NCBI GenBank assembly: GCA_977017575.1
Contig: CDRNVI010000019.1
Coordinates: 124,001 to 188,000 of the forward strand
From: Paramoeba atlantica
Taxonomy: Eukaryota > Protista > Discosea
Reading direction: 5' to 3'
DNA length: 64,000 nucleotides
The notes below the pieces were generated by a model. That model had not been told where the DNA came from. It saw nothing but the letters and a program-made list of their open reading frames with translations, and ran no database searches. The translations under genes and the position numbers were made by a program. Shown here in pieces: positions 13,357 through 42,375 of this stretch (position 1 is its first letter; every line of letters begins with the position of its first letter).

Positions 13357-13435
13357 GTGCGCAAATTGTACAATTTTTATGCCATGTACTTCGAAACCAA
13401 GAAGGGGGTTAATTGTTCTACAAATACAAATAGTA

Positions 13436-13773
13436 CCGTATACCCCCCCCAGTAAGGTACCCCCCCAAGAGAGATTTGGCCCTTTTTGGGCTGACCCCCC
13501 AGTAAGAGAGATTTGGCTCGGGAGCCCCACAGGAGGCGTATAGGGGGTAGAGGGTAGGGGGTGGGTGTCTGCATGTTGGGGGACTCGGGGGTAACCCAAA
13601 GAAGCGTTTTAAGTTAATACGTGTTAAATTAACACGTTTTCACAAGAAAAAATAGAAAAAATAGTCAAAAAAGTTGAGAGAAAAGAGGAAACTGGCGAAA
13701 AAAGCATACCCCCCCAGTAAGAGAGATTTGGCCATTTCGATCCAAAACCCATTCTCTTACTGGGGGTATACGG
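13436..13773. mobile_element. 338-bp MITE, pogo/Tc1-mariner type, TA TSD
   Basis: TA|CCGTATACCCCC(CCC)AGTAAG ... CTTACTGGGGGTATACGG|TA; internal direct copies of CCCCCC(AGT)AAGAGAGATTTGG near 13460, 13495 and 13709. Confidence 0.85.
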
Positions 13774-14129
13774 TATTAGCTACGTAAAAGTTTTCAAGGT
13801 AGTCAAACGAAGGTCCTATGCCGGATATGCACAAAACGACTAACCCGATTAAAAACTGCACATATACAACGAAAAAGTAATAGTAAGATCATCATACGCA
13901 TGTCTTACAGGGGCATCCCGATTTTATACTGTATGTATCGCACCTTCAGATGCACATTGTATTCCTATGGAGAACATAGGGAAGTATTCTACTTTTCAGC
14001 TAAGAGTCCTACAAATCGTCTCGTAATTGCCAGCGCGTGACAAAGTAATCAATAGTTCCGGTACCATGTACTCTTTAAAAATATATATACAGATATACGC
14101 AGTTGAAAACGAAGAATAATGTTTGACTG

Positions 14130-16805
14130 CTATTCCACCAAACGTCCTTCTTGTTCTAGCTCTTTTAAAACATCTTCAAACGGAACTGCAGTGTGATCAA
14201 TATCAGGTACTGAACCGATTAGTTTTCTAGTAGAACTGTGTATCGAGTCTTGTGCATCTGGAACTGGACCTGAAGGAGCCGACGAGTCAACTGGCTCGTC
14301 AACAAGTCGTATGAGCGTCTCTGGCTTGGCATTTTTTGAATACTTACCATGACAGCATCGGCTAGAAGGAATTCTACCCCACGGATGCGCCCGAATCGTT
14401 CTATAATTAGGATGTCGAGCTTTAAACAAGAGCTTTCGCCACATGAGATCTTTATAACGTAACGGAGGTCTCACGCCGAATTCCATACTGTTGTGAGCAC
14501 GAACACGAAGTACCACGTCAGCACTGGGAGAGTAAAATGTAATCCACCCTAATCCATTGAAATATATGTCAGCTTTCGGATAGTTAATGTTGTCGTCACA
14601 TTCAAACAAAAACTTTTTTGTCTTTTTTAAGCCTTCCCGTACTGCATTAGGGTCATAAGGGGGCTTAAGTAGTGTTCCCGTATGCTGTCGCCACGTGTCT
14701 TCAGCCAGTTCTGTCTCAATTCGAAGGTGGGACACATCACGCGAGCAATAAACACCTGCAAGTAAACCATGATGACTGCACCTTATCACATCTATGGCCA
14801 CTAACCCACTCAAAAACAGTGTAAATTCCTGTGCAAGCTTATAGTACGTTGGTTTGAGTCGCTTTCGAGAGGGGACCTGCATTGAACACTGTGCTTGCTC
14901 GCGAAGGTTCAGTACTGTTCGATGTTGCCAGCGCGGGATTACCCCAGGCGTGTCATATAGTGTGACATTCGCCGTCTTTGCAGCTAGGGGGATACCGACC
15001 ATTCGTATCGTTGTACCGGGTATAGGGGACGTTGTGACTACTTTGGGTATTCGCATACGATTCGTGCCAAGAGGAATCCGCGGCATGTCCGCCGGGGAGG
15101 CATGAGGAGGAATTTTCCATTTCGCCTCAAGTCGTGTCGTTCCGTCCACTTGAGCACGAAGGGAGTACTCCTTTGTGGCTCCTGGGTGGGGTGGCTGGGG
15201 AGCCGCATAGTAGCGCATGAGTGCATTCATCACGGAGGACTTGCCCACATTCGTGCAACCGACCAGGTAGGCATTGGTAGGTGCTCCCGGCAAGGAGCGA
15301 GTTATGTTTGTCAGCTGATCGATGCGATTTGCAAGTTGCTCCATATACCATCCATGCCGCGCGGATACAACCATAATGTCTTTTAAATGTTTGGGCTGTA
15401 CACGTAGGGGTCGGAGTTGGTCGTAGATCCATGCCCGGTAGTAGGAGTGACTCTGTGCTACTTTGCGGTATAGTTCCTGAGAGGTTTCCATCGGTGTTCG
15501 TTGAATGAGATCCAGTTTGTTCGCCACAAGAAGAATAGGATTATTCATACTGATTAAGCTAGGGAGGTCCTGAATTAACGTACCATTGAAATTCGATAAG
15601 TCCGTAACAAGAACTATAAGACCCTTTTCGTCTCGAAGAGCGCTGAGCTGTTCTCGAAAGTCTTGAGCGGACATTATAGTGTCTTCTGTTGATGTGCGGT
15701 AATTCTTCAGGGCTCGACATCGTGAGCATACAACCGGATATAATTTACTAAAATGCATAGAACGAAATTCTTGATCAGTCATAAAGTCCAACCACTCTTC
15801 TCCATATTGCTTTCCGTTCTCGGCCCAGTGGCAGAGTAAGCGATACCTGCGTTCAGCATATTCTGTGCGGTCTTTCATTGTCATGCTGTACTTTGTGAGC
15901 CAGTCGTGTATATGGCGATGCGTAAGGTACCCGAATTCTTGTTCATTTTCGGATTGAAAAGCGGCACCACATCCAGGACAGGCGTCTACACCTATGGTAG
16001 GTATTTCAAAATGCGGTGTTGAAAAAGTAAGCACACTGCTTTTTTCTGCCTGTTGCTTTTCCATTTCACTGGCTGCCGCGTAATCGATTCTTTGGCGCCC
16101 ACCCCAAACAGAAAACCAGGATTCAAATTTACATTTAGCAGCTTGCAATTTGTTTGCTCTGGCGAACTCGTCATCGTCCAGCGTTGTCATTAAAACACCC
16201 TTCTCAAACTTGGATTCTAGGCTCTCCGCGTTTTTAGGCGTCGCGGGATCACGATTCACGCAAAGATGCATGATTTTATTGTACAAGGAGTTTAAGTGTT
16301 TATTTAACGGTTGAAGAGCGTCCCGCTGCTCGTCCTTCATAAGATAGTACTCAAGACCTTCAGGTATGATCTGGCGCTTTGATGGTACAGAAGTGGCTTC
16401 AGGAAGAAGGGTGTGTGGTGATTTTTCTGCGAATGCTTGTAATTTCGATGACGCCCATTCTTGCACGGAAAGGGAGTCTGAGGCATCGCTAGATGGCCTG
16501 AGATCGTGTGTTGATTGCGATTGCATCGTATTTGAAGTGATCTCCTCGGGTATCCTTTGCTCCACTGGAGTTGAAGAAATGAGCGGAAGACTCTCTTGCG
16601 CGGATACCTGCCCCATATACAAGCTCACTGGAGTTGAACTGCTAGTTTTACGCTTAGAAAATGGGGTGGATGCGGTATTCATCCCTTTCTCCGCAATTGT
16701 TGCTGTGGTTACCATAGTGACTGCACGGGAAGAACGTCTGGAGCGAGGCTTTTTCGTAAAAGATGAGACATACTTACCAAGCTGTGTATGTCGCGACAGA
16801 AACAT
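14130..16805 (-). CDS. NOA1: Circularly permuted mitochondrial GTPase (NOA1/MTG3/YqeH family)
   Basis: CPGCG...CSRC zinc finger, NKLD (G4), VSA (G5), GCTNVGKSS (G1), DTPG (G3). Confidence 0.85.
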   Translation of the reverse strand: MFLSRHTQLGKYVSSFTKKPRSRRSSRAVTMVTTATIAEKGMNTASTPFSKRKTSSSTPVSLYMGQVSAQESLPLISSTPVEQRIPEEITSNTMQSQSTHDLRPSSDASDSLSVQEWASSKLQAFAEKSPHTLLPEATSVPSKRQIIPEGLEYYLMKDEQRDALQPLNKHLNSLYNKIMHLCVNRDPATPKNAESLESKFEKGVLMTTLDDDEFARANKLQAAKCKFESWFSVWGGRQRIDYAAASEMEKQQAEKSSVLTFSTPHFEIPTIGVDACPGCGAAFQSENEQEFGYLTHRHIHDWLTKYSMTMKDRTEYAERRYRLLCHWAENGKQYGEEWLDFMTDQEFRSMHFSKLYPVVCSRCRALKNYRTSTEDTIMSAQDFREQLSALRDEKGLIVLVTDLSNFNGTLIQDLPSLISMNNPILLVANKLDLIQRTPMETSQELYRKVAQSHSYYRAWIYDQLRPLRVQPKHLKDIMVVSARHGWYMEQLANRIDQLTNITRSLPGAPTNAYLVGCTNVGKSSVMNALMRYYAAPQPPHPGATKEYSLRAQVDGTTRLEAKWKIPPHASPADMPRIPLGTNRMRIPKVVTTSPIPGTTIRMVGIPLAAKTANVTLYDTPGVIPRWQHRTVLNLREQAQCSMQVPSRKRLKPTYYKLAQEFTLFLSGLVAIDVIRCSHHGLLAGVYCSRDVSHLRIETELAEDTWRQHTGTLLKPPYDPNAVREGLKKTKKFLFECDDNINYPKADIYFNGLGWITFYSPSADVVLRVRAHNSMEFGVRPPLRYKDLMWRKLLFKARHPNYRTIRAHPWGRIPSSRCCHGKYSKNAKPETLIRLVDEPVDSSAPSGPVPDAQDSIHSSTRKLIGSVPDIDHTAVPFEDVLKELEQEGRLVE

Positions 16806-17213
16806 CAAACAAAAAGAAGAATGGCACTCCTCTACTCAGTGATAGAATCTTATTAGCTACATGAAGAAATAATTTCAGCGACGCAATTAATTAATTAAGG
16901 CAATGATATAAATTAAGTCAATGATAGGTAAAAAAAACTTTGATATACAAATGCCACGAACGAAGCATCTTTATCGTACTGTAGAACTTAATTTGTTTTT
17001 AACTTTTAAGATTATGACTAGTCATCTCTGAAAATTAAGATAACGATTTATGTACATACACCGCGTATGTATAAATAAAATATGAATTACAGAGAAGTAT
17101 TTATTGCATAGATAAAAAAAGGAGGATACCCAAACATAGAACCGGGATAAAAACATGAGTTACCGCTTCTGGCATGCCCATTACTAAAGCTGATACGAGT
17201 ATTAAGAACACAG

Positions 17214-18497
17214 TTATGTTACGGAAACAAAGCCGGAAACAATACTCAGCACGCCACATACTATCCCCATGCTTATCACAATGTAGTTCAGTATTTTCGT
17301 TGATTTTGAGAGCTTGTTACTAAAAATACAAGTGTGGAATAGGGAAGGCAGTATGAATGCTGTGGAGGCGGTTAAACCACCTCCAATAGAACTTACAGGT
17401 CCGAACCCATGTGTGGCGAATGTAGCGCACACACCACTTGAGATCACTATGATCCATCTTACCAATGTCGTCACGTGGCGATACGTGCATATACGTGAGT
17501 ACAAAGCAGATATTCCACGTTTCCGTCCAGGAATAGAATCTACAGGCTTTGCAGGCTCAAAAACGTGGAACACGGGGTACATAACTAGAGGATATCCGCA
17601 AACCAACATAAGACTCACGCACATGCGCAGAACGCTAAGGACCGGGTTGTCATCAGGAAGGTTGAGAAAGAGCACCGCATTTGTGGATTCTCCGAATGCA
17701 GCGTAGACTAAAAAACTAAAGCCAACGAAAGACACGAAAGCAAGTAAGAAAGCCGACACTGCGGCAAATGCGTACCGCTTGCGAACATTCAAGGGCGTGT
17801 CTTGAATGAGCTCCAACGTTTCGACGTGTGCAGCGAACGCGAAAACCAGAATTCCGAATGCCTCAAAGGCACCTGTGAAAGTGGTATAAGGAGCGATGCG
17901 ATCAAACAAAACTCCATGTATCCGAAGCGCGTGGTACAAAACAGCACCTATGCCACTAAAGAAAGCAATATTTCCAAGAGCAGAAGTAAGGCTTAAATGC
18001 TTTGTTGACTTTGGCACACAGAGAAACATCTCTATCAGGGTAATTATTATCACCATAACCCTGTGGTCCCATTGAGGTGCAATGATGGGGGTGGAGTTTT
18101 CGGCAATGAATATAATGTACGTGACGCATGCAATCCATTGACAAGGAACAATGCAAAGAAAAGCAACGAGAGGTCCGGAAACTGAATTTTGAAACGATCG
18201 TCGCGCAAGCTCAACGTACCCAATGTGTGTGGTGTTGTTTAATGTTGAGGTTGTGTCGTACGTTGTGTTGCTAACTTCGCTGAGATGAGCTCTTTTTTCT
18301 ATCTCCTCATCTGATACCTTTAGGGCACAGGCACATACTTGCAGCACTGCACGTACGGTGCAAAGCCATACGATTGTGACAAGAAGAAGACCTACGGCCC
18401 ATCCAGCCCGCATGAAACAGTATGGCATAGCAAGAACTCCGGTTCCTGACACCGACTTAAAAATGCTCAAGAAAAGTCCAAATACAGAACCTTTCAT
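17214..18497 (-). CDS. Amino acid transporter (AAAP/Aa_trans family)
   Basis: KSVSGTGVLAMPY motif; about 11 TM helices. Confidence 0.88.
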   Translation of the reverse strand: MKGSVFGLFLSIFKSVSGTGVLAMPYCFMRAGWAVGLLLVTIVWLCTVRAVLQVCACALKVSDEEIEKRAHLSEVSNTTYDTTSTLNNTTHIGYVELARRSFQNSVSGPLVAFLCIVPCQWIACVTYIIFIAENSTPIIAPQWDHRVMVIIITLIEMFLCVPKSTKHLSLTSALGNIAFFSGIGAVLYHALRIHGVLFDRIAPYTTFTGAFEAFGILVFAFAAHVETLELIQDTPLNVRKRYAFAAVSAFLLAFVSFVGFSFLVYAAFGESTNAVLFLNLPDDNPVLSVLRMCVSLMLVCGYPLVMYPVFHVFEPAKPVDSIPGRKRGISALYSRICTYRHVTTLVRWIIVISSGVCATFATHGFGPVSSIGGGLTASTAFILPSLFHTCIFSNKLSKSTKILNYIVISMGIVCGVLSIVSGFVSVT

Positions 18498-18862
18498 TGG
18501 GGAAATTTAACTACAGTAAAAAAATGTATTGTTCCTATCAATATTTTCGTAACCACTTTGAGATGTGAGAAAAAGGTGAAAAAAATGAGCTGACCCTTTT
18601 AATAATCCCTTTGTACTTGACCCGTGCTACAACTTCGTAGGATTAATCATCTACCGTATACGTTGCGTTATTCTAGTGACATGGCCCGAAATTACAAATA
18701 CAACACAGCATGTCAACTTCAGTGAGTTGTTCTAGGAAAACAGATCTTTTTGAAAAGAGTATTTGTAGTAATAGAGAGATAGTCGAGTTCTTATAAATGA
18801 AATACGATAACGCAAAAGCTAATGAAATGTTTTTTGACCTGAGAAGGAATTTTCAATATTAG

Positions 18863-20533
18863 TCATACCTGCAAGCCAATACTTTCTATGCTGATTTTGG
18901 GAAGTACATCGTGCACTTCTTGGGCTATGCCCAGTAGATATTTGTCCATGACAACAGGAGGTAGATTTCCCACGTGCTGAAGTTTTTGAAAGGCTTCCGT
19001 GGGTGTGAAATAACCTATCCAAAGTAGAAGAGGCACCACGATGGTAGGAACGCTAATGTGAGGACATTCCTCGTGTGACAAAAGCTTATAAGCACGAACA
19101 AGAAGCCGAGTCACTGAAACAGTTCCTTGCTGAAGAATTATACAAAGGGCGTGAAGACTTCGCGAAAATAAGGAGAAAGAACGTACCGCGGGCAAAGTTA
19201 AGCAGCGCCTACCGGAGGCATTTACCACTCTGAGCAAAGTAGAGCATTTTCTGTTGTGAGAAATTGAAGTTGACAACGTACGTATTGTCCATGCGGACTG
19301 TAGCGTATTCTCCCCGCACGCGATAATATCTTCGTAGACAGTGGCAATCAGTACGTCGACCAACATTGCACTGCGTGCTTGAAGAATGCTTTTAGTGCTA
19401 TTTCCAAAATCAAAGTAAATATCCCAAACCTTCTTTTGCTGTAGTAAAGAGAGAATAATATTCTCTTCTTCGTTTGTCCACACAATCTGCAAGGACAGAG
19501 GATGCAGAACGCTTCCTGGTTTGTAACCTTCCGACTTTCGACAGGGCATCACAACATTCAAATATTTGGAGAAATGATGCTTTTCATCAAAGTCCTTACT
19601 GGAAAGAAGCTCAACCATATCATCCTTCTTTGGCTTAGAATGAGCTTGTAAATTTGAAGACCGAGGCCCAATCTCTTCATTCGTTCCTTTGCCAGTAGAA
19701 GAGAGTATGTCCACATTTCCTCGCCATAATATCTCATCTTCGGCTGCTGGAAGGATTGAAGTTAAGGGGTCACATTCAGGAATTTGGGATGTTAATAAAT
19801 TTACAACACTCTTTAAGTGTTTCGAGACATCATACTCGGTATCTTCGAGAATCGGCAAAGAATGCGACAAGAATTCACGTGATGGACATGTATCCGGTTG
19901 TTGGTGCAGTATGTACCATGGAATATACTCTTTAATAGCTCTATGTATTTCAGAAGTACCGTCATTATCACAACCCCCCAATTCATCACACCAGAAATGT
20001 TCAGTCGAAAAAGAAGCATCTTCCTCTTTTCTGCAAATTTCCTCTATTTTTGTTTCAGAGTCAATAATACTGTTACCACTAGCTTGATCATTGCGAGCAT
20101 GTGGTAGGAGCTCCATTCCGTTATCGAACCCGTAACGAGTAATTTCATCTGTTTCGATATTATTTTCTGAATGTGCACCTTGTTTACATGATTTTATAGT
20201 ATCATAAAGGCTATTTCCGAGAGAAGCACACCCAAACGAGTCTTCTTCCTTTTCGATAACACGATAAGTCACTCCAGACTGGGATTTAGCAACGCGCACC
20301 ACCACAGTTGCTCTATTTATGTTATACCACGCAAGCTCTCCAGCGCCTTCTAGCAATTCACCCCCGCTAAATATAAGATGGAGTGCACGAGACCCCCATC
20401 CAAAAACAAACTCATTATCTGCTATTTCGAATTGTGGATCCGAAAACTCCATGCCAACCTGAATGTACAAGTAAACGTACGTATCTGTCTGTGAACACCA
20501 CCAAAGCTGCGCTTTTTGATTTCCAAAACTCAT
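18863..20533 (-). CDS. SHQ1: SHQ1 H/ACA snoRNP assembly factor
   Basis: N-terminal CS-like domain (SQTDTYVYLYIQV); YGFD; SAWTIRTLS motif. Confidence 0.75.
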   Translation of the reverse strand: MSFGNQKAQLWWCSQTDTYVYLYIQVGMEFSDPQFEIADNEFVFGWGSRALHLIFSGGELLEGAGELAWYNINRATVVVRVAKSQSGVTYRVIEKEEDSFGCASLGNSLYDTIKSCKQGAHSENNIETDEITRYGFDNGMELLPHARNDQASGNSIIDSETKIEEICRKEEDASFSTEHFWCDELGGCDNDGTSEIHRAIKEYIPWYILHQQPDTCPSREFLSHSLPILEDTEYDVSKHLKSVVNLLTSQIPECDPLTSILPAAEDEILWRGNVDILSSTGKGTNEEIGPRSSNLQAHSKPKKDDMVELLSSKDFDEKHHFSKYLNVVMPCRKSEGYKPGSVLHPLSLQIVWTNEEENIILSLLQQKKVWDIYFDFGNSTKSILQARSAMLVDVLIATVYEDIIACGENTLQSAWTIRTLSTSISHNRKCSTLLRVVNASGRRCLTLPAVRSFSLFSRSLHALCIILQQGTVSVTRLLVRAYKLLSHEECPHISVPTIVVPLLLWIGYFTPTEAFQKLQHVGNLPPVVMDKYLLGIAQEVHDVLPKISIESIGLQV

Positions 20534-21002
20534 TGATTTTTTCGAGGTGAGATTAAAATTTGTGTTTCAATCACGCAAAGTTGGTTCACGCCTATTCCAA
20601 GACTGGTTGAAAAAGCTGGCGCAGCAGTGAAGTTACGTCATTCTAATAGAATCAAGATGTAGCATTCTAGGATCAACATGAAAGTATGCGTGCACGGACA
20701 CACATAATAATAAAACTTAATCGTATTCTTTGAATGGTCGCGTATTATTCCACATATACTAACATGTACTCTTTGCTTTTGCACAACAATCAGTCTTGTA
20801 ATAAAGAACGTTCGACTAAAAAGTATTATAAATCATGTGGTGGTGCAGCGGATAGACGTGTACGCCTGACACACGCGTATGGAACACATGACGTATTGTT
20901 CAACTGAACGTTCGTGCAAGCAAACGTGCATATGCAGTATACTACTCACAGAATCTCAAAAATCTACGACACGAAAAGGTATGTTTTCTATAATAATTTC
21001 AC

Positions 21003-22184
21003 TTAAGGAATTGTGTATTCATGTGATTGTCCTTCAAGCTTCTTGGTTTCTGCAATTTTTCGCACAGCTTGATTAAAGTCCTCATTTAACACATGGTCAC
21101 GTTCATCTCTTAGCGCGAACATGCCAGCTTCCGTGCATACATTGCGTAGATCCGCACCATTGAAACCTTCACTGAGACTGACGATTGACTCGTAATGGAT
21201 CTCACCTTTGATGTTCAACTTGGCAGCATGTATTTTCAAAATATCGTCTCTTGCGGACTCATGCGGAAGCGAAATTTCAATTTTTCTATCCAGTCTTCCA
21301 GGGCGAAGCAGAGCAGAATCTAGTACGTCGGGCCGATTCGTCGCCATGATTGTCTTCACTCGCCCCAAGGCGTCAAAACCATCCAACTGGTTCAACAACT
21401 CCATGAGTGTGCGTTGAATCTCACGATCGCTGCTTGTGCCTTCTATACGTTTCCCTCCGATGGCGTCAATCTCATCAATAAAAATCACACAGGGCTCATG
21501 ATCACGTGCATATGCAAACATTTCCCGCACAATACGCGCACTTTCTCCGATATATTTATCCACGATCGCACTGGCTACGACACGCAGAAAGCTTGCCTCA
21601 ATGTTACTCGCAATCGCTTTAGCCAACAACGTCTTTCCCGTTCCCGGGGGGCCGTACAACAAAACCCCTTTCGGAGGCATAATACCGACGCGTTTAAAAA
21701 GCTCCGGGTTCACTAAAGGAAGCTCAATAACCTCGCGGAGCTGCCGCAGCTGCGACTGGAGACCACCGACTTCACGAAAAGAAATATTGTCGACCGACTC
21801 CGCATGTTGAGACATTTTGTACACCAATGGATCAACCTCCCGGGGAAGCGTACGCATCACGGTAAGTGTTGTAATATCCAGCGCAACACGAGTGCCTACT
21901 TTTAGTTTGGTCTTATCCACGTTAGCACGGATCCCGACCACGTAGCGTGGCCCACTAGAGGCTTTTACCATGGCCTGCTCGTCGGATAGCACCCGCATAA
22001 TCTCACCGGTAATTTGTCCGACACTTTGTAGGCTCTTTACATGCTCCTCACTTTGATCGTACTCACCTTTAGCATTTTTTATATTGTTCCGTAGAGTTTT
22101 CAAGCGCGTTTCAATAAGGTGGTGATCCTCCATCTTTTTGCGTAGTGCAACCACGGCTTCGTTTCTGGCAACCTCTTCCGGCAT
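21003..22184 (-). CDS. RPT4: 26S proteasome AAA-ATPase subunit RPT4 (PSMC6)
   Basis: [37 protein letters not shown]. Confidence 0.95.
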
Positions 22185-22324
22185 GTTCTAATAGTATGTT
22201 AGTTGATTACCAATATTACACAACTAAAAGTCAATAGAATAGAGAGTTCTATACGGCAGGTAAGTGTTCGAACAAAAAAAAAGTTTACGAAATAATGTAA
22301 CATCGCACACTGATCTTGAGTACC

Positions 22325-23236: not shown

Positions 23237-23666
23237 ACGTATGACATAAACTCACGCATATTATACACATTGTACTTACTACGTGTTATTACGCCAAAGA
23301 AGATACTTGTGTACTAGTAATTTTAAAATTTAAATTTTAATACTTTTCCATCAATACTAAATTCTATCTAATTACTGTAGATTTAAACAAATTTAAGAGA
23401 AGCCCTGAGAGAGTAAGAGCAGGTTTTGTAAGATTTGGGTTATAAACTTTATGCTTAGTAGTACACTACCTAGTATACTGTACGATACGATGCTAGAATT
23501 CTAAAACTAGTGCTATTGTAACATGACCAACGCACAATTGCTGGTAAGGCAGAAGAATGTTATAAATTCCCCCCTTCCAAGGTTTTTCAACAGCGCAGCA
23601 GCAAAAAAATACTCGACGTGCCGAACTTTTCGCAAGATTTGCGTAGGCCACCTTCGTTGAGCCACT

Positions 23667-30496: not shown

Positions 30497-30669
30497 AAAA
30501 CGTGCTGGACGAGGGAACCAAATCGTTAAATACCTCCAAATAGTAAGTCATACATTAATATTGCGACCAGGGGGGTATCTACTGACGCGACAGTCCACTG
30601 CCGCTACACACTGTCCTATAGTAGTAGGATTACAGGGGTAATATTGCGCCCTTTCTAAAAAAACATGAT

Positions 30670-31008: not shown

Positions 31009-31038
31009 CGAATCTCCGTAAAACCAATTCGCTCAGCG

Positions 31039-31908: not shown

Positions 31909-32387
31909 TTCTGTGTGTAGCCAAGCGAGTTACATCAAAAACGTCGTGTAGTTATACAACAAGAAAAAAGACCTTTTTCTGGATCAAATCCCTAAAATAA
32001 ATCTTTAGTGCAACTCTACTGAAGAACTGTAGACTTCTTCGGCAATTGATCTCGAATATCTAAATTGGAATATCTAATCTACTGTTGTTGAAATTTTGAA
32101 AATGATACAAAGTTACAGTAATTAATAATTTCAAATTAATGTCGCAACCCACCATTTCCGAATCGTGAAATGAGCGTTTATGACGATATCATAAGGCACA
32201 TATCGTGATCATAATGTTGATATCATAGTACACTTATCTTGACAGGAAGAAAATTTAATATAAGCAAAGGAATTGAAGTCTTCCGTATAAGGGATACGTC
32301 CCAAATTCTGAACAATAAAGTACAAGACATAAAAAAATGTAACAACAATAGATTTAGTTAACAACAATCGATTGAATACCGAGCTAA

Positions 32388-35255
32388 TCAGCTGCTCAAG
32401 GTTTTGCGAACAATTTCAGCAACGTTTTTCGATAGCCCTTCTGTTTGCCCTATCATCTGCAAAAGTCCACGAATCGCAGCTTGTCGCCCTGGCGTATAAT
32501 ATCGAAGAAGTGCGAAAGCATTGACAACTCTCGCAGCAACCTGAGCGTTAAATTTGTCCAAACTAAGCACGTGCCGTGCCATGAAGGCGTATCCACTGTA
32601 GCTTGCATCATGGAAATTCACATGACTCCCTTCAAATGCTGCAATTAGTGAATATATACTGTTTGGATTCGTCTTCACAAAGCTCGAACTGTTATAAATG
32701 CTTTCAAGCTGTCCAATGTTATTCGGAACGTTCGCGGTGGCGTGCGCCCTGTACCATTTCAGGATCACGAGAGGTTCGTTCTTCCACTTTTCGTGAAACT
32801 CATCGAACGCTACGGATCGACTAGAACAGTTATAATTCAAAGATTGCAATGCAGCGATCTCATCTGTCATGTTCGTTGCTGATCGAAATCTCTGTAACAA
32901 TCGCTTCTCAAATTGAGTATCTTCCAGACGAGCCAGCATTTCATAGGCTTTATTTACTATCGCCCTTCGTGCTACCTCGGCCGGTTTAGTGCTGTATACC
33001 ACTGGACCAGTCTCTATATTATCGATAATTTGTTCCAAATGCCCTCGAAGTCGAAAAGAGAGCTCGGAATTTAGGAATTTGGTGACATGGTGAAACAGGG
33101 GTGGGTCAAGAGTAGCGTGAGGAAACTCTGAGATCAATTCGTTTAGAACAGGTAGCGAGATAGCATGTGCTTTGAACTTGTTATCAATTTTTTCATCAGT
33201 CAATATCGACTGAAAGCCTTTGACAACACAATCCTCAAAGAGATAAGAAAGTCTGCCGTCCTCGGAAAACAAAAGTTCTCGTAATACTTCATTGGATAAC
33301 TGTTTCGCAGAGTTTACCCCAAATTCCGACGCTAGACCATGAAATTGTAAGAAATGTTGTCTTGCCTTTCGATATAATCCTAAGATAATTTCACGGCATA
33401 AACTTTGCCCTGCATCATACCGCACAAATTCATCGGTATCATGACGGAGCAAAGTCATCAGATCTGTATCCTTTTGATTCTTTATTCGGCATTGCACGGG
33501 GGCGCTAAAACCTCGTAGAGAGGATATAACGGGAGTACACGCTCCACTATTGCTTAAGTGAAAAGTAAAGTAATTCTCCTTATTGTCGACGCGAAGAACA
33601 GTTTCAATAGTCTGCTCACACGAACTTGTTTGTCCATCAGCTTTCAAAATGAAAGAGAGTAGGTCGCCTGTTTTGGGGTGAAGGAATGCAATTCGAATAG
33701 GAATCAGAAGAGGTGTGGACTTTTCTGCGGTGTCTTTTAAGCCCGACGAAATGTTTTGAGTAACTTTTAAAATAAGTATTTCATTGGTAGAATCATAAGA
33801 GGGCTCCATTTCTACCATGGGTGTGCCAGCCGTAGAATACCACGAGCGAAACTGAGATAAGTCTTCTTCATTTGCGTCTGCCATTGCTGACAGGAAATCT
33901 TCACATGTCACCGCTTGCCCATCGTGCCTTTGAAAATAGAGATCCATGCCCTTGCGAAACCCTTGTCTCCCGAGCAGTGTTTCGTACATGCGCACCACCT
34001 CGGCTCCCTTTTCGTACACCGTAGTGGTATAAAAATTATCAATGGTTTCGTATACATCTGGGCGCACAGGGTGAGACATGGGACTTTGATCTTGAGCAAA
34101 TTGGCGAGAACGCACGACAGATATATTGCCCAATCTGGTTACGGCTCTGGAATTCATGTCACAGGAAAATTCTCCATCTCTATAAACGGTCAAGCCCTCC
34201 TTTAATGTCAACTGAAACCAATCGCGACAGGTTACTCGGTTTCCCGTCCAATTGTGAAAGTATTCATGACCTACTACCCCCTCAATGTACTCGTAGTCAA
34301 AGTCCGTGGCAGTTTTTGAGTCAGCAACTATAACCTTCGTATTGAAAATGTTCAAAGATTTATTCTCCATTGCTCCCATATTGAAATCGTCCACAGCGAC
34401 AACATTGAACAAGTCTAAATCGTATTCTCGACCGAAGGTTACCTCGTCCCATTTCATTGCCTTCTTTAGAGATGCCATTGCGTGATCAAGTCTATTTAAA
34501 TAGCGTTCATCTGAGTACATGTGAAGGGCTACATTTCTACCGGACATAGTTTCGAAACTGTCGGTCTTCCTGGATAATTTGCCAGCAACGATCGCAAACA
34601 GGTAAGTGGGTTTAGGAAAAGGATCAACCCATCTTGTAAAGTGAAATCCTGGACGGCCTTGCATTTTCCCTGATTCGGAAAGATTTCCATTGCACAACAA
34701 GACCGGATATCGACTTTCTTCTGCAATCAAAAGCGCATCAAACTTAGATAATACGTCAGGTCGATCAAAGGCATAAGTAATGGCACGAAACCCCTCGGCT
34801 TCGCACTGCGTACAAAAGGTCCCTCCGCTCTTATACAAACCTTCAAGCTCTGTATTCTTTTGTGGCTGAATACAAACTTCAGTTGAAAGCTTCCACACAT
34901 CAATAGTTGAATCCTTTTCTTGATGTAGTAAATTGGGGGAGAGGTGGAGATTTTGATTTATTAGTTTATAGTTTTCTCCACGCTTCAGGACATAACCATT
35001 CAGCTTAATTTCATTTAATTGTAGCATTTTGTGGCCATGAAGTAGCAATCCATGTTCCTTAACGTATTGAAGAGGAGTACGTCCGTGTGCTTCAAGAAAT
35101 GCGATGTCGGTGTGATCTTTCAAAACTATTTCTGTCGCACATTTTACAAGCGTAGACTCCTCGCCCAGTTCTATGTTCAAGGATATCTTCTGCACCTTAA
35201 TGGGCAATGGTTTATATTCTTTGCGGTAAGTCAGCTTCGCGATGTCCGCACACAT
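32388..35255 (-). CDS. pepN: M1 alanyl aminopeptidase, PepN type with DUF3458-like C-terminus
   Basis: TQCEAEGFR, GAMENK, HEYFH...E zinc motif, YEKGAEVVRM. Confidence 0.95.
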   Translation of the reverse strand: MCADIAKLTYRKEYKPLPIKVQKISLNIELGEESTLVKCATEIVLKDHTDIAFLEAHGRTPLQYVKEHGLLLHGHKMLQLNEIKLNGYVLKRGENYKLINQNLHLSPNLLHQEKDSTIDVWKLSTEVCIQPQKNTELEGLYKSGGTFCTQCEAEGFRAITYAFDRPDVLSKFDALLIAEESRYPVLLCNGNLSESGKMQGRPGFHFTRWVDPFPKPTYLFAIVAGKLSRKTDSFETMSGRNVALHMYSDERYLNRLDHAMASLKKAMKWDEVTFGREYDLDLFNVVAVDDFNMGAMENKSLNIFNTKVIVADSKTATDFDYEYIEGVVGHEYFHNWTGNRVTCRDWFQLTLKEGLTVYRDGEFSCDMNSRAVTRLGNISVVRSRQFAQDQSPMSHPVRPDVYETIDNFYTTTVYEKGAEVVRMYETLLGRQGFRKGMDLYFQRHDGQAVTCEDFLSAMADANEEDLSQFRSWYSTAGTPMVEMEPSYDSTNEILILKVTQNISSGLKDTAEKSTPLLIPIRIAFLHPKTGDLLSFILKADGQTSSCEQTIETVLRVDNKENYFTFHLSNSGACTPVISSLRGFSAPVQCRIKNQKDTDLMTLLRHDTDEFVRYDAGQSLCREIILGLYRKARQHFLQFHGLASEFGVNSAKQLSNEVLRELLFSEDGRLSYLFEDCVVKGFQSILTDEKIDNKFKAHAISLPVLNELISEFPHATLDPPLFHHVTKFLNSELSFRLRGHLEQIIDNIETGPVVYSTKPAEVARRAIVNKAYEMLARLEDTQFEKRLLQRFRSATNMTDEIAALQSLNYNCSSRSVAFDEFHEKWKNEPLVILKWYRAHATANVPNNIGQLESIYNSSSFVKTNPNSIYSLIAAFEGSHVNFHDASYSGYAFMARHVLSLDKFNAQVAARVVNAFALLRYYTPGRQAAIRGLLQMIGQTEGLSKNVAEIVRKTLSS

Positions 35256-35419
35256 TTTTTCAAAAGAAAAGTAAGAAATGCAGGATGGAAAATGAATAAC
35301 AAGCGTATTTTTGTGAAAGTGAATAGCAAAATTCTTCCGTGTTTAGACAAGAGCCCAAAAAGCAAAATAAAACCAATCCTCGAATCTATAACAGTTATAG
35401 ATTCCATCATAAAATGATA

Positions 35420-36745
35420 TGTTAACCCCCCTAGGCCCACCGGAAGCATACCGCCCCACCCCCTTCGTCCTACCCCCGAACCCCGCAGCGGTACCAGTCC
35501 TGTACCGCCGCCTGCACAATCTGGGCATTCCCTCTCTGGATGGCCACCCCGATGGCCATTAAGAGATGGGCGAGACACCCATTCTTGTCCGATGAGTGGG
35601 CCCGGGCCACCTTGTTGAGGAAGGTCAAGGTTTCTGGGCCCGGGATCCCGTACGTGGAGAAGGCCAGAGGGTGGAATTCCATGCCCCTCACCAGCGCCAT
35701 CTCCTCATGAGAGCGCCTTTTGTTGGCCTCAGCCATCCTCAGCGTGTGAGATGGCTCCGCGGCCTCCTTCTCCACGTACGACGGGGCCAGTGGGTTCACA
35801 ACTGTGACGTCAACCAGGACGATCTTCCGTCCCAGCTGGAAACAGATGTCTGGCCCCCGTCCATTGTCGAACCTCGGCTCGTGGAGGTCCGGGTTGAACC
35901 CATAATGGACCAAGAGGTTCCGAAACGTCTCTTTGACTTCCTTATGGCGGGAGGCCTGAGTTTTCCCCTTCACCTTGCAGTCCAGTGCGTGTACGCAAAA
36001 CTCCTCATTGCTGAGGGTTGCACCGCACACGCACTGGAGCTCAGGCTCCGAGGTCGGGGCGACCAGGTACCGGAGGCGGGCCGCAGTCTCACACTGCGGA
36101 TCCCGCATGTAGTACTCCGGCCTATTTGGCAGGGCACTCATCCACTTGGTGGAGTGCACATTCTGGATCTGTCGCATGCAGACCAGTTGGGTTGCCGTTG
36201 GGGCGTTCCCCAGGGCTGCCGCACAAAGGTTGCGTCGTAGATCCTTGGCAGAAATTCCAGGTGCTATGCCTTGAAGGGCGTTTTTTGCCTTAACCTGCAT
36301 ATCCTGGGCCTTGTGCTCGAAGGGGATGGTCCCCAGGAAATCTACCGTAAAAAGGTTATTAGTAAACGGCGTTTTCCCCAGGGAACCCATCCCCCCGAGC
36401 AGGGCCTCGGCACATGCCATGACGGCCTTATCAACCTGGTCGTTGGCCTTTTTGGTTACCGGAGGCTCATGCGTCCTCACAATGAAGTTCCATCTGGGGC
36501 TTCCGCAGAGCCTCAGGAGGGGCATGGCGCATTGCCTGCTGATCTCCTTCAATTTCTCGAGGAAGGAGATCACCTTGGGGGTCCTGGAAAGAACCCAATC
36601 CTCCTCCTTGTCCTCGGACTCCCCGATGTACGCCCCCAGGAGTTTTAACCCCCCTGGGGAATGTATCATCCGAGTCCCAGAGAACTCCGTGAAGAATTTT
36701 TCGTGCCTTGTGGCAACTTTACACTTGGCGGCGTTCAGCCGTAGC
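35420..36745 (-). mobile_element. 5'-truncated CRE/SLACS-clade non-LTR retrotransposon (RT C-terminus + RLE endonuclease; ORF 35470-36745)
   Basis: RLNAAKCKV and GLKLLGAYIG (RT end); CxC...HALDC knuckle; RH; EP...PDI; DVTV; FHPLAFSTYG; AIQRGNA; visibly GC-rich against AT-rich flanks. Confidence 0.88.
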
Positions 36746-37022
36746 AAAACATGTAAAATGACATTGCTAAAAAACACATTTTATCTCTGTCCTCGTATAA
36801 AAAGGGAACCGAAATCAGGGTCCACGCAAGACATACTTTATTACCCAGCACCATGTCTCCCTTACAGTAAATACTAAGCTTAGATGCAACTTTACGCAAC
36901 AAAATCAGTTTGACGTGCAATGTTGATATCATAAGATTTGATCAATGGATTGACAGATAAGGGTTTTTCATCAGAGAGTTATTTCGCCTGGAGGATATAC
37001 TCTACTAGGCTTCGTCGAAAAG

Positions 37023-37072
37023 GACAAATAAGTGGGGGGTGGAGCTGTGACAAATAAGTGGGGGGGGCACAG
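37023..37072 (-). repeat. Solo transposon end related to the pogo-like family
   Basis: Two direct GACAAATAAGTGGGGGG copies ending CACAG|TA; reverse complement reads TA|CTGTG-C-run like the 38590 end; no partner end found. Confidence 0.6.
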
Positions 37073-37220
37073 TACATCAATCTATCTCATTGCAGATGAT
37101 GAATCAGCATCCCCGTTAACATGTACACTTCCGTCCAAGAATACATGTATTTTACATGTTGTACATGTTGTACATTTTATTGAAAAATGTCCATCCAAAA
37201 AATGGCACCGTTCTGCGGCT

Positions 37221-37266
37221 CATGATCGGGAAGTACACTTCCTCATGATTGGGAAGTAAACTTCCT
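37221..37266. repeat. Two tandem 23-bp units, each with a GGAAGT-N2-ACTTCC palindrome
   Basis: catgatcgggaagtacacttcct / catgattgggaagtaaacttcct. Confidence 0.8.
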
Positions 37267-37568
37267 CACTTGGCTGAGCATACCCCTTCCCGAAAACTGG
37301 CGCGATGCCTAGCAGATGAAGTCGCGGTATAAAATTGAAAGTATGAAAGAGGACTTCACGTAAGACAGGGCAGTGCCCAATGAACTTCATTGAATGAAGC
37401 GAAAACGTGTGCAGAATTAAAGAAATCGATGGCTAGAAGAAAATTACGGACTTCTTTATCTTTTTTTATCTCCCCTCCCTCAAATCGCGAACAAGTACAA
37501 TTACATAATTCCCATGATTGACAACAAGACTCGTACAGCACCGTCCCAACAGACAGTTTTCGTGCATA

Positions 37569-38314
37569 CACCCATGGACAGAAGTGTGCCCCCGGCCTGG
37601 CAAATGTCGATTTTTTTACCCGTTTTTTCTCATTTTTGCAGCATTCGAGAGATCTCGTTCCCCTAGCGAAGAGTTTTGCCGCCTTTGCTTCATAGGGACC
37701 CCCTGGTACCCCCTGTTTCCAAAAAACATGGTTTAATTGCCCGTTTTTTTGGAACACAGTCAATTTCTCTAGTATATTATCTTTTTTTCTCCCTGTTTTT
37801 TCTTCATGAGGACCCTGCCTCGCATAAATCATAAACGAAACATCGTTTTGTCGATTTCGGAGCGAACAGAGATAGTCAAACAGCATAAATCCACATAACT
37901 TTGTAGTTTTAAGCCACACAACTATGTAACCCTGACAAAGGCCACAGGAAAGGCGTTTAATGCTCTAAAACGTGCCCCACATAGATAGAAAGTGTTGAAT
38001 TCCATCAAATCTGTTCCTAAACGTATGCAAATAGTTATTCAGACCAATGGGGAGCATTGCGGATATTGATACTTCTTCCTTTTTTCTCATTTTCTCATTG
38101 AAAGGGTGATTTTTTTTCTAGATGTCTAATGCACCATTTTTTGTTTTTGGTCTACTTCGGGGTCACCACCAGAGCACCAGGGGGTCCCTATGAAAAAAAG
38201 GCGGCAAAGCTCTTCGCTAGGGGAACGAGATCACTCGAATGCTGCAAAAATGAGAAAAAACGGATAAAAAAAATGGCATTTGCCAGGCCGGGGGCACACT
38301 TCTGTCCATGGGTG
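37569..38314 (+). mobile_element. 746-bp internally deleted Tc1-like element, 139-bp TIRs, TA TSD
   Basis: TIRs 37569-37707 and 38176-38314 (CACCCATGGACAGAAGTGTG...); TA on both sides; transposase C-terminal remnant inside. Confidence 0.92.
37911..38069 (+). pseudogene. Tc1-like transposase C-terminal remnant
   Basis: KPHNYVTLTKATGKAFNALKRAPHR*KVLNSIKSVPKRMQIVIQTNGEHCGY* matches the Tc1 end pattern SMPRRL-AVI---GG-T-Y; one internal stop. Confidence 0.7.
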
Positions 38315-38589
38315 TATAACGGCGTACAAACAAGATCTCGTAGGCATCTAAAGGTGAACCACGAAACGGAGGGCTAATCGACGATGGCTTTTGCGTTTGA
38401 ACGAAAATTCTTTTGCAAATTCATCAGAGGCTATGTACTGTTTCAGAAAAAAAATCTTTTTTCGGCGGGTTTTGAGTGCTTATGGTGCGCTTTTTGCTTC
38501 ATTTACTACGAACTTTCGGCTCCTCACTTATTTACGGAGCAAGTTGCAGCGACCATGCGCACACGCTTGGCATAAATAATTTTGATTTA

Positions 38590-41458
38590 CTGTGACCCCC
38601 CCTTTAATATGGACAGGGGGTATTCCCCCCCTTTATTATGGACAAATCCGACCGGGCGCCGCGCAGCGGCGCAAATCTTTTTGGCGTACCCTTTTTTTTT
38701 TGTCTCTTTTTTTCTGTTTTTTAGGGTATCTGTAGCTAGATAATTTTGTCAGCTTTCACATACGTAGTTCTTTCACATATGTAGTTCGTCATGTTCATAT
38801 AATTCAGTCATTTTTCAACCTAATGAATTCCGTGGAAGGACCCTTAACCTCTTGGATTAAGGCAACACCCCCAAAGCCACAGGTAGGTAATCCAACAATG
38901 TTGATTACAAATGAGCGCAATGTCCACGCTTCTTTAGATATCCACGTAAAGGAGAAAAGGGGACGAACTGAGCTTAATATATACGAGAAGCGCGAAATCT
39001 GCCGATCGACTCTCTCGGTAAAAAGAATCCGAGAAAAATTGCGGAATTTCGCGAAGCGGAGTATATGAAATCCGTAGCCACGGTATGAGCTACTTTCAAA
39101 AACTCATTGATCGTTCCATGGGGAACAACCACAGGAATCGTGCTTTTAACGTTCGAGGAGGCGACTACAATGATCCCGAAGCAGTCTGCTACAACAAGTC
39201 TGAGGCAATGGAACGGGTACACTGCTCCTGCGTCCAAGCTTCCTCGTTATGGTGTCCCCTCACCAGAAATATCGTCATCGACATGATACGACAAAATACG
39301 GGATTGACTTCAATTAGTGCTTTGGAAGACACTTATGCGAAGTTCAGACGGTACTATGGTTGGGTGTGGTGGCGGTGGGGCAGAATACAGTGCTTAGCCC
39401 CCGCTGATGTGAACTTCAGAATTTCTCGTTGGGCTGAAAAGCTCTACGTTCAAAACACAGTCCGTTGCTACCGTTTCGCGTTTTTCGGGGATGAACCCGC
39501 CATGTTTGTCAATGGAGAGGTGCAAGGGCACACACTTGCTCCGGTAGGGTGCCCGCAACCTAAGGTAGTGGATACAAACCCAAAGGAAACAGTAACGGCA
39601 TTTCTTGCGGGCGTCTATGATTTAGGGGCCGACGAAGTTTACCCGCTCCACCCGACTGTAATTTTTGAGCACGGAGCGAAGCGCAGAGAAAGCTCAACAA
39701 TTTATTCGGAAATGACGAGTTACGCGAATAAATTGAAAGGAATATTTATTGATGTGAGCTCTTCTGGATGGGTGCGAGATGATATATATCCCCGCATGAT
39801 GCACTGTGACCCGCACACAATTCCGGTCGGGTGCACGAAAGCGATCCAAATTCACGACCGTGTATTCAATCGCCTATTTAAGAGGGCGTACAATGAGTTG
39901 CTCAGTGCATGGCGAATACAGAACTCTTCGTGTAAGGTAACTCTTTATTTGGTGCTGGAGTGGATAAAAGAGGCCCATTCGAGAGTGTGGGTAAAGCATC
40001 ACAACACTATTCTTAACGCCGCCCGCAGGTACATCAAGCAATCAGCTACAGAGTATCCAAAGGGCGAGAAGGATCCCGAAAGTGAACCAACCAGAAAAGC
40101 GAAAGTTGAGATAAAAGTCCGTGAGGAAATTTCACCACAAATAGAGTCTTCACGAAATGAGCCGATTGTTGTGCCGGAAACAGAGGAGACTCCTCCCACC
40201 CTGGTTGATACGTGGAAAAAAATTCGACGTCCCAAAAGCTGTCTTACCACGCACGCGGTGGATCAGCTCTTCCAAAACGTAATGGAGGTATATCGGGAAT
40301 TGCCTAATGTAGACAGGCATCTCATGTTCCTAAATACCGGACAGACGCAGTTGATGTTAGGCCTGGGCCGCAAGCCAAAACAGCATATTACATCGGTTCG
40401 TCGAATAGCCGCGGCTTTAATTTTTAATGGGCATTTTATCCTTGTCAATTTCCAGAGGTTTGGGCTAACTGTTTTCGACAGTTACGAAACATATTGTCCC
40501 TCTGCTCGATCTGATTTTCTGAACAGCATCATGATTCACATGCGTCCACTGATAGGTTTCTCTGCGGAGATGAAGATTAAATACGCCGCAGTGCCGCAAC
40601 AGCAACCAATGACGAATGAATGCGGGCTCCATTTGGTAAACAATCTGTGTAACTTGCTTTTTTTGGTTCCCGTGGAGAACAAGCTCACACGCAAAAACAT
40701 CTCAAAAACATGGCGACCATGCGTTCCCGGTACTCTGTCTCATCGTCCTGCCCTCACTGAAGAGCTTCACGATGAGGAAATAATTGACACTCAAGATTGT
40801 TTAGGGCAACTAATGCTTCATCCAGACAATGACCGCGGGGACATGGACACAGAGGGGTGGGATCAGTCAGTAGCGTATGATGATACTTTTGAATTGTAAA
40901 AGGGCTATTATTTTATTTTGTTATGATAAGTTTACGTGGGGGTTTTTCCGTGAGCTCTTAACGTTAGTCTTGTTTTTTCCCGTTGTGAACGTAAGTTCTT
41001 TCTTTCCACCTTTAGTTCATTTGTGTGAAACTTTGTATGAGTAGGAAGTTTGGGATCGATTTTTACGTTAGAACATCTACAATTTAACTGAATGGAACCT
41101 TTATAGCTACACGGAATATAGAGCTGAATGTGAGCATGCATGATTTTTTGCTTGTTGTTAATTTTTTATTCCTAATTATAGTGTACATCAATAATGTATA
41201 TCCTCCATGTATCCTTCACCCTAATGAAGAAGTGCCCCTTCACTCCTCATTGATGCCCTCCTCCCCCGCCCTCTTCCTCTGCTCTCCTCGCCCTCTCTCC
41301 TGGACATGGATTTTACAATTTTGATTTTTTGTCGTATTATAAGTAAAAAAGGCGCCGCGAAGCGTCGCCATTTTTTTTTTCACACCCCTTTCATCGCCCC
41401 CCCCCTTTATTATGGACAAAAGCCGAAAAAGTGTCCATATTAAAAGGGGGGGTCACAG
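38590..41458 (+). mobile_element. 2869-bp pogo-like DNA transposon, 26/27-bp TIRs, TA TSD
   Basis: TA|CTGTGACCCCCCCTTTAATATGGACA ... TGTCCATATTAAAAGGGGGGGTCACAG|TA; encodes transposase-Ulp1 fusion. Confidence 0.92.
38823..40899 (+). pseudogene. pogo-family DDE_1 transposase fused to C-terminal Ulp1/C48 peptidase; +1 frameshift near 39020-39024
   Basis: HTH-like EKREIC...CGISRSGVYEIR across the frameshift; FGDE(D136), TLAPVG, KETVT, SSSGWV, IPVGCTKAIQIHD(D258), VLEWIKEAH; protease H450 (NGHFILV), D465 (FDSY), C513 (QQQPMTNECG); numbering from ATG 39085. Confidence 0.85.
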
Positions 41459-41460
41459 TA

Positions 41461-41765
41461 CTATCCCTTAATAGGGCTACGTGTCACCCCCCCTTTAATA
41501 GGGCCATTTTGCCTGGAAGGCCAAAAAAGATTTCAGGGAAAATGCGAAAAAAATTGTCGAATGCGCCGCGAAGCGGCGTATTTTCTTTTCCGCATCTACC
41601 CCAACAACCAAAAGTGTATCAAAAGGGAGTAGGACCTTGTTTGACAACGATAAAAAAGGCGCCGCGAAGCTGCGCCGATTTTTTTCTTTCATATTATTTT
41701 CCATGTCTCCCCCTTTATTAAGGCCTTTTGCCCAAAATCGGAGTCCTATTAAATAGGGGGGATAG
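41461..41765. mobile_element. 305-bp MITE related to the pogo-like element, abutting its right end
   Basis: TA|CTATCCCTTAATAGG ... CCTATTAAATAGGGGGGATAG|TA (imperfect TIR); subterminal CCCCCTTTA repeats; two GCGCCGC-GAA-GC hairpins. Confidence 0.7.
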
Positions 41766-42324
41766 TAACTAACTTAACAACGCAACACACTCGCTGGCTC
41801 AAGTACAGAAGACTATCCACAACAGCAGACGTTGAAAGCTCTGCGTGATCCTGGTCAGTGTCAATCTGTATTAGAAGAATTATTAAACAAATGTTATCTC
41901 CCAGTCGACTCCCGGCGCAGATTACCGAATTCCGCTGGGGTACCACCCTTGTACCGCGGCCTGTATCATCTACGCAGTCCCTTTGAATAGTCACCCCACG
42001 GCTATCACTAAAAGGGTTGAAACATCCCCAGCCGCACCCACCCGCACCCAGTCGCACACAGTGTATCTTCAACGGCAAAGACTTACGGCAAGCGAAATTT
42101 AGGAGATCCAGAAGGAACACGTTCGGGGTACTACTCCCCGAGATGATAACTTTTTCAGTTAATTTGTACGGGTGCTTCACCATGCGCGTATTTTTGCAGA
42201 ATACAACCCAAAAGAAAGTGAGACCCGTGTAGACTAAAAACCTTTCACAACATGAACTTTATGTCCTTACATTGACATAAAACTAACCCACAGTCCGGTT
42301 TATCCCAAGTGAGGTAAAAAAGAA

Positions 42325-42375
42325 CCTATAAAGGGGGAGAGGGGTCGAGGCTATTGTATAAACGGGGGAGTACAG
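42325..42375 (-). repeat. Second solo transposon end of the same type
   Basis: CCTATAAAGGGGG...TATAAACGGGGGAGTACAG|TA; reverse complement TA|CTGTACTCCCCCGTTTATA with a second direct CCCCCTTTATAGG. Confidence 0.55.

Follow-up and report, generated by a model that had tools for sequence, protein, structure and literature searches.

A shared asymmetric end layout in the C-run transposable elements of a kinetoplastid-like genome

Introduction

Why should several transposable elements of unlike sequence carry their terminal motifs in one and the same asymmetric arrangement? The question is raised by a 64-kb window, by which is meant the whole stretch of DNA analysed (64,000 nucleotides, positions 124,001 to 188,000 of contig CDRNVI010000019.1, here C19, in the Paramoeba atlantica assembly GCA_977017575.1). 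In it, a 2.9-kb element and two MITEs (miniature inverted-repeat transposable elements) are bounded by runs of C followed by a short motif. An earlier note on this DNA proposed that these C-run elements form a single diversified family, in which each subfamily has its own transposase binding site. This proposal is partly supported by the finding of six transposase lineages, each with its own motif at four sites, and of 11 motif families in all. We put at about 0.7 the probability that the ends belong to pogo-type cut-and-paste transposons, which form a large and diversified group, and to non-autonomous derivatives of these, with asymmetric sites and lineage specificities that work as in the mechanism proposed below. 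The anatomy of the elements, their geometry, the concerted change of motif within lineages, the copy numbers, the protein family and the TA duplication of a related MITE are read directly from the data.

The assembly of 45.7 Mb, of which the window contig is a part, is eukaryotic, and the genome that harbours the C-run elements is kinetoplastid-like: the window genes, for example those for an M1 aminopeptidase and importin alpha, are intronless and one-stranded, which is the kinetoplastid pattern. Two haplotypes of the region are present in the assembly. The sister contig, C43, is about 99% identical to the window in genes and flanks and 97-98.6% identical in the transposon-rich stretch. Beyond the window, 62 loci were taken from the genome, with transposase-bearing elements oriented by their gene. 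The elements examined were chosen by a TA-anchored terminus pattern, and the DNA and profile searches of the genome itself score the best candidates only, with copy numbers being lower bounds.

The window elements

Family A is represented by the 2.9-kb window element, and M1 and M2 (MITE2) are the families of the two window MITEs. G and H are the families of two solo ends in the window, and I is another MITE family. The features of the window elements are as follows (+ and - denote the strand).

38588-41460 (+): family A, a defective pogo-type transposon of 2.9 kb, including its flanking TAs (38588-89 and 41459-60)
38596-38615 (+): family A left-outer site, C7 + TTTAATATGGACA, within the 28-bp terminal inverted repeat
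38625-38644 (+): family A left-inner site, C7 + TTTATTATGGACA, direct
41397-41418 (+): family A right-inner site, C9 + TTTATTATGGACA, oriented as the left-end sites
41432-41452 (-): family A right-outer site, inverted, within the right terminal inverted repeat
38823-40899 (+): disrupted gene for the transposase/Ulp1-like protease, now read in two frames, 38823-39068 and 39085-40899
41459-41767 (+): MITE M2, 305 bp plus flanking TA
41465-41477 (+), 41487-41505 (+), 41709-41725 (+) and 41743-41761 (-): the M2 sites
13434-13775 (+): MITE M1, 338 bp plus flanking TA, with a terminus of TACCGTATA + C-run + AGTAAGAGAGATTTGG
13443-57, 13460-81 and 13495-517 (+): three direct left sites of M1
13709-33 (+) and 13748-66 (-): right sites of M1, direct and inverted terminal, respectively
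37004-37074 (-): truncated left end of family G (C-run + ACTTATTTGTC), with two direct sites at 37022-37067 and its TA at 37073-74
42316-42377 (-): truncated left end of family H, with two direct sites at 42325-42370 and its TA at 42376-77

The window copy of family A is defective, and intact copies are located elsewhere in the genome, which holds more than 30 full or partial copies of this family. Compared with the intact copy L001:403-3341, to which it is 97.7% identical, it has a 1-base insertion at 39039, which shifts the frame within the first predicted helix-turn-helix, and has lost 90 bp at 39803, a deletion that takes away the second catalytic Asp. M2 abuts it directly, since the left TA of M2 and the right TA of the family A element are a single shared TA (41459-60).

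M1 and M2 have the properties of MITEs, being short (305-338 bp), non-coding, bounded by inverted repeats and numerous. At least 40 copies of each were scored, from 335 (M1) and 84 (M2) first-look candidates, and the small elements are thus not the single-copy sequences that would have spoken against the earlier proposal. The copies are 74-100% identical (74-98% for M2) and lie in unrelated flanks. The layout of sites seen in the window recurs in four more copies of M1 and five more of M2. At L060 (G000:C69:210600-211700), a single pair of termini, spaced by about 730 bp, encloses overlapping M1 matches, which suggest a tandem or nested M1 cluster.

The two solo ends, which had been described as having two direct copies of the motif, indeed have them, and they turn out to be truncated left ends, on the minus strand, of multi-copy families. 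The family G end is found at 30 or more loci in the genome, and the window has only the first 71 bp of an element that is 1263 bp long at L029:134-1396 and 563 bp in a shorter copy. The family H end, with outer site GTTTATA(A/C)AATAGCC and inner site TTTATAGG, is found at 18 or more loci and comprises only the first 60-62 bp of elements of 311-338 bp (L034:54-364 and L036:50-387). In annotation, a solo end can be assigned to its family and to its side, left or right, from about 60 bp.

End layout and its conservation

In all of the TA-flanked elements that the earlier note named, the ends are asymmetric as it had described, with two or more direct sites at the left and one direct plus one inverted site at the right, and every site has now been located. 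The order along the element is left-outer, left-inner and right-inner, all pointing forward, followed by right-outer pointing back. Each end starts with the flanking TA and C(T/C)(G/A)T, followed by a C-run of 5-10 and a motif of 12-13 bp.

The geometry was tabulated with a script that maps each family's motif in 30 elements from the 11 motif families. In ten of the families, the two left-end motifs are direct and start at +14..18 and +42..46, and those of the right end start at -54..57 (direct) and -15..17 (inverted), each counted from its own end. M1, the eleventh family, keeps these orientations with other spacings (L+16/+32/+68, R-61..65 and R-14..18). The outer unit lies within the inverted repeat of about 28 bp. 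On the left, the inner unit is placed 28 bp further inward and co-directed with the left-outer unit, while on the right it is placed 38-40 bp inward and opposed to the right-outer unit. Along the element, the two inner units are therefore co-directed with each other and with the transposase gene.

A family-blind classifier, cruder than motif mapping, was applied to all termini of the collected loci and found 26 direct-type ends, 31 inverted-type ends and three ambiguous ones; the other 38, left unclassified, are variant inner sites or chance matches of the loose pattern. Both ends were classified in 13 complete elements, each of which has one end of each type, and never two alike. In each of the six lineages with transposase sequence, it is the direct-type end that lies upstream of the gene. 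A MITE at L025:4366-4699 that had been taken for a deviant layout was rejected as such, the element merely being flipped.

The number of inner sites is less constant than their direction. Expanded arrays are found in some lineages, whose left end has three direct sites and whose right end has six direct ones and an inverted one. Six tandem right-end inner sites are seen in one lineage (L005, L017, L018 and L025). On the sister haplotype (L052; G000:C43, around 313815-313858), the left inner-site region corresponding to window position 38644 is 42 bp longer and includes extra partial copies of the site. Judging from these sequences, the site arrays evidently expand by slippage.

Two further loci also carry arrays of repeated units. 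A different TA-flanked family without a poly-C tract, with terminus TAAACGGGGATGC + GGATTATTATTGCA, is inserted in an M2 copy with TA duplication at L056:287-680 (G000:C22). It has the same asymmetry, with seven direct sites at one end, and at the other an inverted terminal site accompanied by one or two direct sites. At L020 (G000:C37), two tandem arrays of C8-12 + TGGA, each with at least six copies, lie about 850 bp apart (1576-1650 and 2427-2501). These may be degenerate or extreme C-run site arrays.

GC-rich mini-hairpins with GAA, GCA or TTC loops (of the GCGCCGCGAAGCGGCGC type), flanked by runs of A or T, are found just inside both ends of several C-run families and resemble bacterial terminators. 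In the window, they are at 38655-38680, 41350-41375, 41563-41585 and 41655-41690, and they also occur at the ends of L014 and L022.

The transposase and its fused domain

Intact relatives of the window protein are 721-771 amino acids long (L001:620-2785 and, on the minus strand, L002:811-3126). Four parts can be told apart in them: at the N-terminus a short conserved motif, then two predicted helix-turn-helix units, the DD30D catalytic core and, C-terminally, a putative Ulp1-like cysteine-protease domain. By its sequence, the protein is identified as a pogo-type DD30D transposase (Pfam DDE_1, of the IS630-Tc1-mariner group) fused to an Ulp1-like protease domain. Pfam DDE_1 matches the L002 protein with 29.1 bits against a cut-off of 22, and a piece from L004 scores 21.2. 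The window copy gives no DDE_1 match because of its 90-bp deletion. Residues D223, D344 and D375 are invariant in nine relatives, and the 30 residues between the last two define the DD30D spacing.

The N-terminus was modelled with AlphaFold as two three-helix bundles, at residues 53-86 and 125-178, with a predicted local distance difference test score (pLDDT) of about 85-90. Its matches in Pfam are weak (CENP-B_N, E-value 0.041; HTH_28, E-value 0.15), and a Foldseek search with the model ranked CENP-B(1-129) third, with an E-value of 0.38. A likeness to the DNA-binding domain of CENP-B is thus only suggestive.

For the C-terminal domain, the matches to clan-CE proteases are weak but consistent, by sequence and by fold. 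The residues H47, D62, Q102/Q103 and C110, in the catalytic order of Ulp1, are invariant in six diverged copies. Pfam Peptidase_C48 matches one of the six (E-value 0.071), and a profile of the domain finds Ulp2 (5lnb) in the PDB with an E-value of 0.039. With the predicted structure, which has a core pLDDT of 65-85, the top Foldseek matches are SENP5, ChlaDUB, NEDP1 and Ulp1 at E-values of 0.01-0.1, with a probability of 0.99 and a template-modelling (TM) score of 0.43 for Ulp1.

A word-based protein database search had a sole match, which is identical (100%) to the query across half its length. A full hidden Markov model (HMM) search of 1.8 billion representative proteins found 203 relatives, among them a named DDE-1 protein of Neobodo designis; P0003 and P0024, also from this search, have the protease-like tail too. 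A metagenome scan for relatives gave no match. Within the genome, the best 63 of 540 candidates from a profile search for transposases included no new clade.

About 100 bp 5' of the transposase start codon (38823), at 38690-38724, is a long polypyrimidine tract with a terminal AG. In sequence, it looks like a kinetoplastid trans-splice acceptor, in which case the element may bring its own mRNA-processing signal.

Motif diversity and two classes of site

The motif that follows the C-run is different in each element, as had been listed before, and the six transposase-bearing lineages each have their own motif at all four sites: TTTAATATGGAC, TTTAATATGCAC, ACTTATGCGCAA, GTTTAAGCGCAC, TTTAATAGAGAC and ACTTATAGTGCC. 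Further examples across the families are ACTTATTTGTC, TTTATACTTCG and AGTAAGAGA. Between lineages, the four sites change jointly, while their positions stay fixed. The sites also stand out clearly from the background: the 18-nt family A site pattern, with up to two mismatches, has five matches in the 64-kb window, which are the four sites of the element itself and the inner site of M2. By chance, 0.01 matches are expected from shuffled sequence, and none of 100 shuffles reached five.

On one point, the earlier description had to be corrected. The copies of the motif at an end are not identical, and inner and outer sites form two classes. Of the 11 elements compared, nine have left-inner and right-inner sites that resemble each other more closely than they do any outer site. 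The inner sites are followed by an A/T tract, and in family H the inner motif TTTATAGGTTC is clearly unlike the outer GTTTATAATAGCC. Each element can thus be described as an inverted repeat of about 28 bp combined with a pair of direct subterminal repeats.

The comparison of helix-turn-helix regions across lineages that the earlier note had called for shows parallel divergence: in pairwise comparisons of these N-terminal regions, identity goes from 64% down to 28%. Lineages A and B, at the 64% end, differ at one motif position. Lineages C and D have a common GCGCA half-site and are each other's closest relatives. This divergence in step with the motifs, drawn from the sequences of six lineages, is only consistent with co-evolution and is no proof of it.

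Genome-wide abundance and TA duplication

Across the genome, the pattern TACTGT-N0-3-C6 has 511 forward and 1100 reverse matches (the latter number inflated by overlapping matches), compared with 15 and 9 for a reversed-pattern control, which puts such termini at about 500 per strand. Since the elements were picked by a TA-anchored pattern, their TA flanks are no independent test of target duplication. TA duplication was observed for a TACCGTAGA-type MITE inside an M2 copy, for which uninterrupted M2 copies provide the empty site, with one adjacent mismatch. The single TA at 41459-60, common to the family A element and M2, is further evidence of it.

Comparison with known systems

The closest precedent is the pogo-like transposon Lemi1 of Arabidopsis and its MITE, Emigrant (Loot et al. 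2006). Subterminal motifs share the direction of the inverted repeat at one end of these elements, and at the opposite end they are reversed and separated from it by 22 bp (PMC1636448). Footprints of the pogo-like protein cover the inverted repeat as well as the subterminal motifs, and the complexes formed at the two ends differ (PMC1636448). The C-run elements are similar in being pogo-type and TA-flanked, with a short inverted repeat, subterminal repeats of a part of that repeat, and MITEs of the same layout. Their motifs are likewise co-oriented at one end and reversed at the other. The asymmetric layout is therefore already known in kind from Lemi1/Emigrant, and the C-run system is a well-documented new variant of it. 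However, the site here is a poly-C run plus a motif of 12-13 bp, each end usually has a single inner site, whose offset is fixed at 28 bp or 38-40 bp, and at least 11 motif classes are built on one geometry. The Ulp1-like domain on the transposase and the kinetoplastid-like host are further differences. Binding by the Lemi1 protein is experimental, while for the C-run elements it is a proposal, and the likeness described here is one of layout.

Two other systems with multiple sites can be compared. Tc1-like elements of the inverted-repeat/direct-repeat (IR-DR) type, such as Sleeping Beauty and Tc3, have two transposase sites per end, of which the inner is accessory, and target TA. Their ends are mirror images within long inverted repeats of about 200 bp. 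In contrast, the right-inner site is direct in all 11 C-run families, and the inverted repeat is about 28 bp. In the bacterial elements Mu and Tn7, the number and spacing of transposase sites are unequal between the left and right ends, which makes the ends functionally distinct, and all sites of one end are co-directed relative to that end. These elements are prokaryotic and use other transposase families, and the right end of the C-run elements differs from theirs in having opposed sites.

In their protein and target, the C-run elements fit the pogo superfamily as described by Gao et al. (2020), with a DDE_1 core, DD29-56D spacing, duplication of the TA and inverted repeats no longer than 40 bp (PMC7386202): they have DDE_1, DD30D, TA duplication (in a related MITE) and an inverted repeat of about 28 bp. 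In two surveys of pogo elements, that one (PMC7386202) included, there is no mention of kinetoplastids, of a protease fusion or of repeats in subterminal position. In a 2021 survey of 89 kinetoplastid genomes, Merlin was the sole DNA transposon reported (PMC8101967); against that record, the present kinetoplastid-like genome has about a thousand termini of one pogo-type group, which bears on the host range.

Proposed mechanism and alternatives

The unit of C-run plus motif is most likely the transposase binding site, which would be read by the two-part helix-turn-helix domain. Such binding is suggested by the co-variation of motif and protein and by the Lemi1/Emigrant precedent. The outer unit, in the inverted repeat, would position the catalytic core for cleavage at the TA, while the inner units would be accessory binding sites that make the ends non-equivalent. 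The resulting protein arrays would be head-to-tail on the left and head-to-head on the right, and a productive complex would need one left and one right end. Co-evolution of the DNA-binding region with its four sites may then have split the lineages into separate specificities, each mobilised by its own transposase. That the asymmetry is a selected feature, and not an accident of one element, is suggested by analogy, because the layout recurs in a plant pogo element with demonstrated binding.

Several findings weigh against this account. The families are related by descent, so that the recurrence of the layout reflects conservation and not repeated invention, and it cannot be counted as 11 independent events. 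The differences between lineages A and B are not clustered in the predicted recognition helix. As to the pairing of end motifs with autonomous copies, as foreseen in the earlier note, six lineages carry transposase sequence together with their own motif, but among the scored matches no autonomous element has ends that fit those of M1, M2, G, H or I, and DNA searches with M1 and M2 gave MITE-sized matches only. Nor was an empty-site allele of a C-run element found, where the note had looked to such alleles of the three window elements: in a 70-kb comparison with C43, the window copies of family A, M1 and M2 are occupied on both haplotypes, and these insertions are therefore older than the haplotype split. 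Attempts at three MITE loci were also negative, due to repetitive flanks at L041, an occupied allele at L047 and a lack of a second haplotype at L048. Finally, most right ends can also fold as strong hairpins, so that a structural role is conceivable, as considered below.

The first alternative is that there are no separate specificities. One or a few transposases would recognise the shared TA-CTGT-poly-C part and cross-mobilise all of the small elements, with the variable motif largely neutral. The terminus and C-run are common to all families, the five MITE families still lack a cognate autonomous element among the scored matches, and the inner site of M2 is two mismatches away from the family A site. 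However, neutral drift would not keep a motif at four sites within a family and make it different between families, and each of the six transposase lineages has a motif of its own. For the group as a whole, this explanation seems unlikely to us, while cross-mobilisation through the shared poly-C part is possible for those MITEs that have no known partner.

The second alternative accepts the sites and denies the asymmetry a role in synapsis: the inner sites would be inherited baggage, or would do no more than regulate the transposase gene, as by autorepression close to its 5' end. A single ancestor with this layout would account for all lineages, the direct-type end is always beside the 5' end of the gene, and the inner arrays grow and shrink, with three left and six right sites in one lineage and a 42-bp expansion on one haplotype. 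Yet MITEs without a gene retain the two inner sites at unchanged distances, and the inner sites co-vary with the outer ones in every lineage, with no decay. In Lemi1/Emigrant, moreover, the subterminal motifs are bound cooperatively and the complexes are altered (PMC1636448). We consider it distinctly improbable that the inner sites have no further function.

Least probable of the three, and in our view very doubtful, is that the right-end pair of sites acts as a nucleic-acid structure, either a cruciform or hairpin in the DNA or an RNA hairpin, which the asymmetry would place once, at the 3' end of the element: right ends do fold far better than shuffles in A (z -4.7), M1 (-5.8), D (-8.9), C (-3.5) and F (-7.8), none of the left ends does (z -1.1 to +1.0), and the M1 right end has weak Rfam matches of a hairpin type (microRNA precursor), but M2 (z 0.0) and H (z -1.1) keep the layout with no better-than-random hairpin, the systematic inner/outer differences would be conserved mismatches, and neither the direct repetition of the same unit on the left nor the six direct right inner copies of some lineages would be explained, which makes a hairpin-only explanation unlikely.

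To return to the reading of the sites as transposase binding sites, a broader version of it is put forward tentatively, as possible though doubtful. The same-direction inner sites might be a code for discriminating left from right ends that came from an ancestor shared with plant Lemi1/Emigrant, and the genome might keep at least a dozen orthogonal transposase/site pairs on one geometry. If so, the series could be used to learn in what way two-part sites are read by a paired helix-turn-helix and what prevents cross-mobilisation. Independently of this, a fixed geometry with at least 11 motifs is a natural experiment in the co-evolution of transposase and DNA. The matched protein and four sites of each lineage make specificity swaps and site orientation directly testable.

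Neighbouring features

An Rfam scan of the window gave no match at the gathering score. Adjoining the truncated family G end, on the minus strand at 35470-36777, is an open frame of 435 amino acids that includes a Cys/His cluster and may end in a nuclease-like tail. It has no significant match in Pfam and may be part of a retroelement.

The only element here that differs in presence between the haplotypes is unrelated to the C-run elements. It is a TA-flanked element of 745 bp at 37567-38311, with inverted repeats of about 140 bp, a Tc1-like deletion derivative that is missing from C43. At its position, C43 has eight extra bases (GTTTTTCG) that copy the adjacent flank, which looks like a repair footprint left after excision, or else the insertion is polymorphic.

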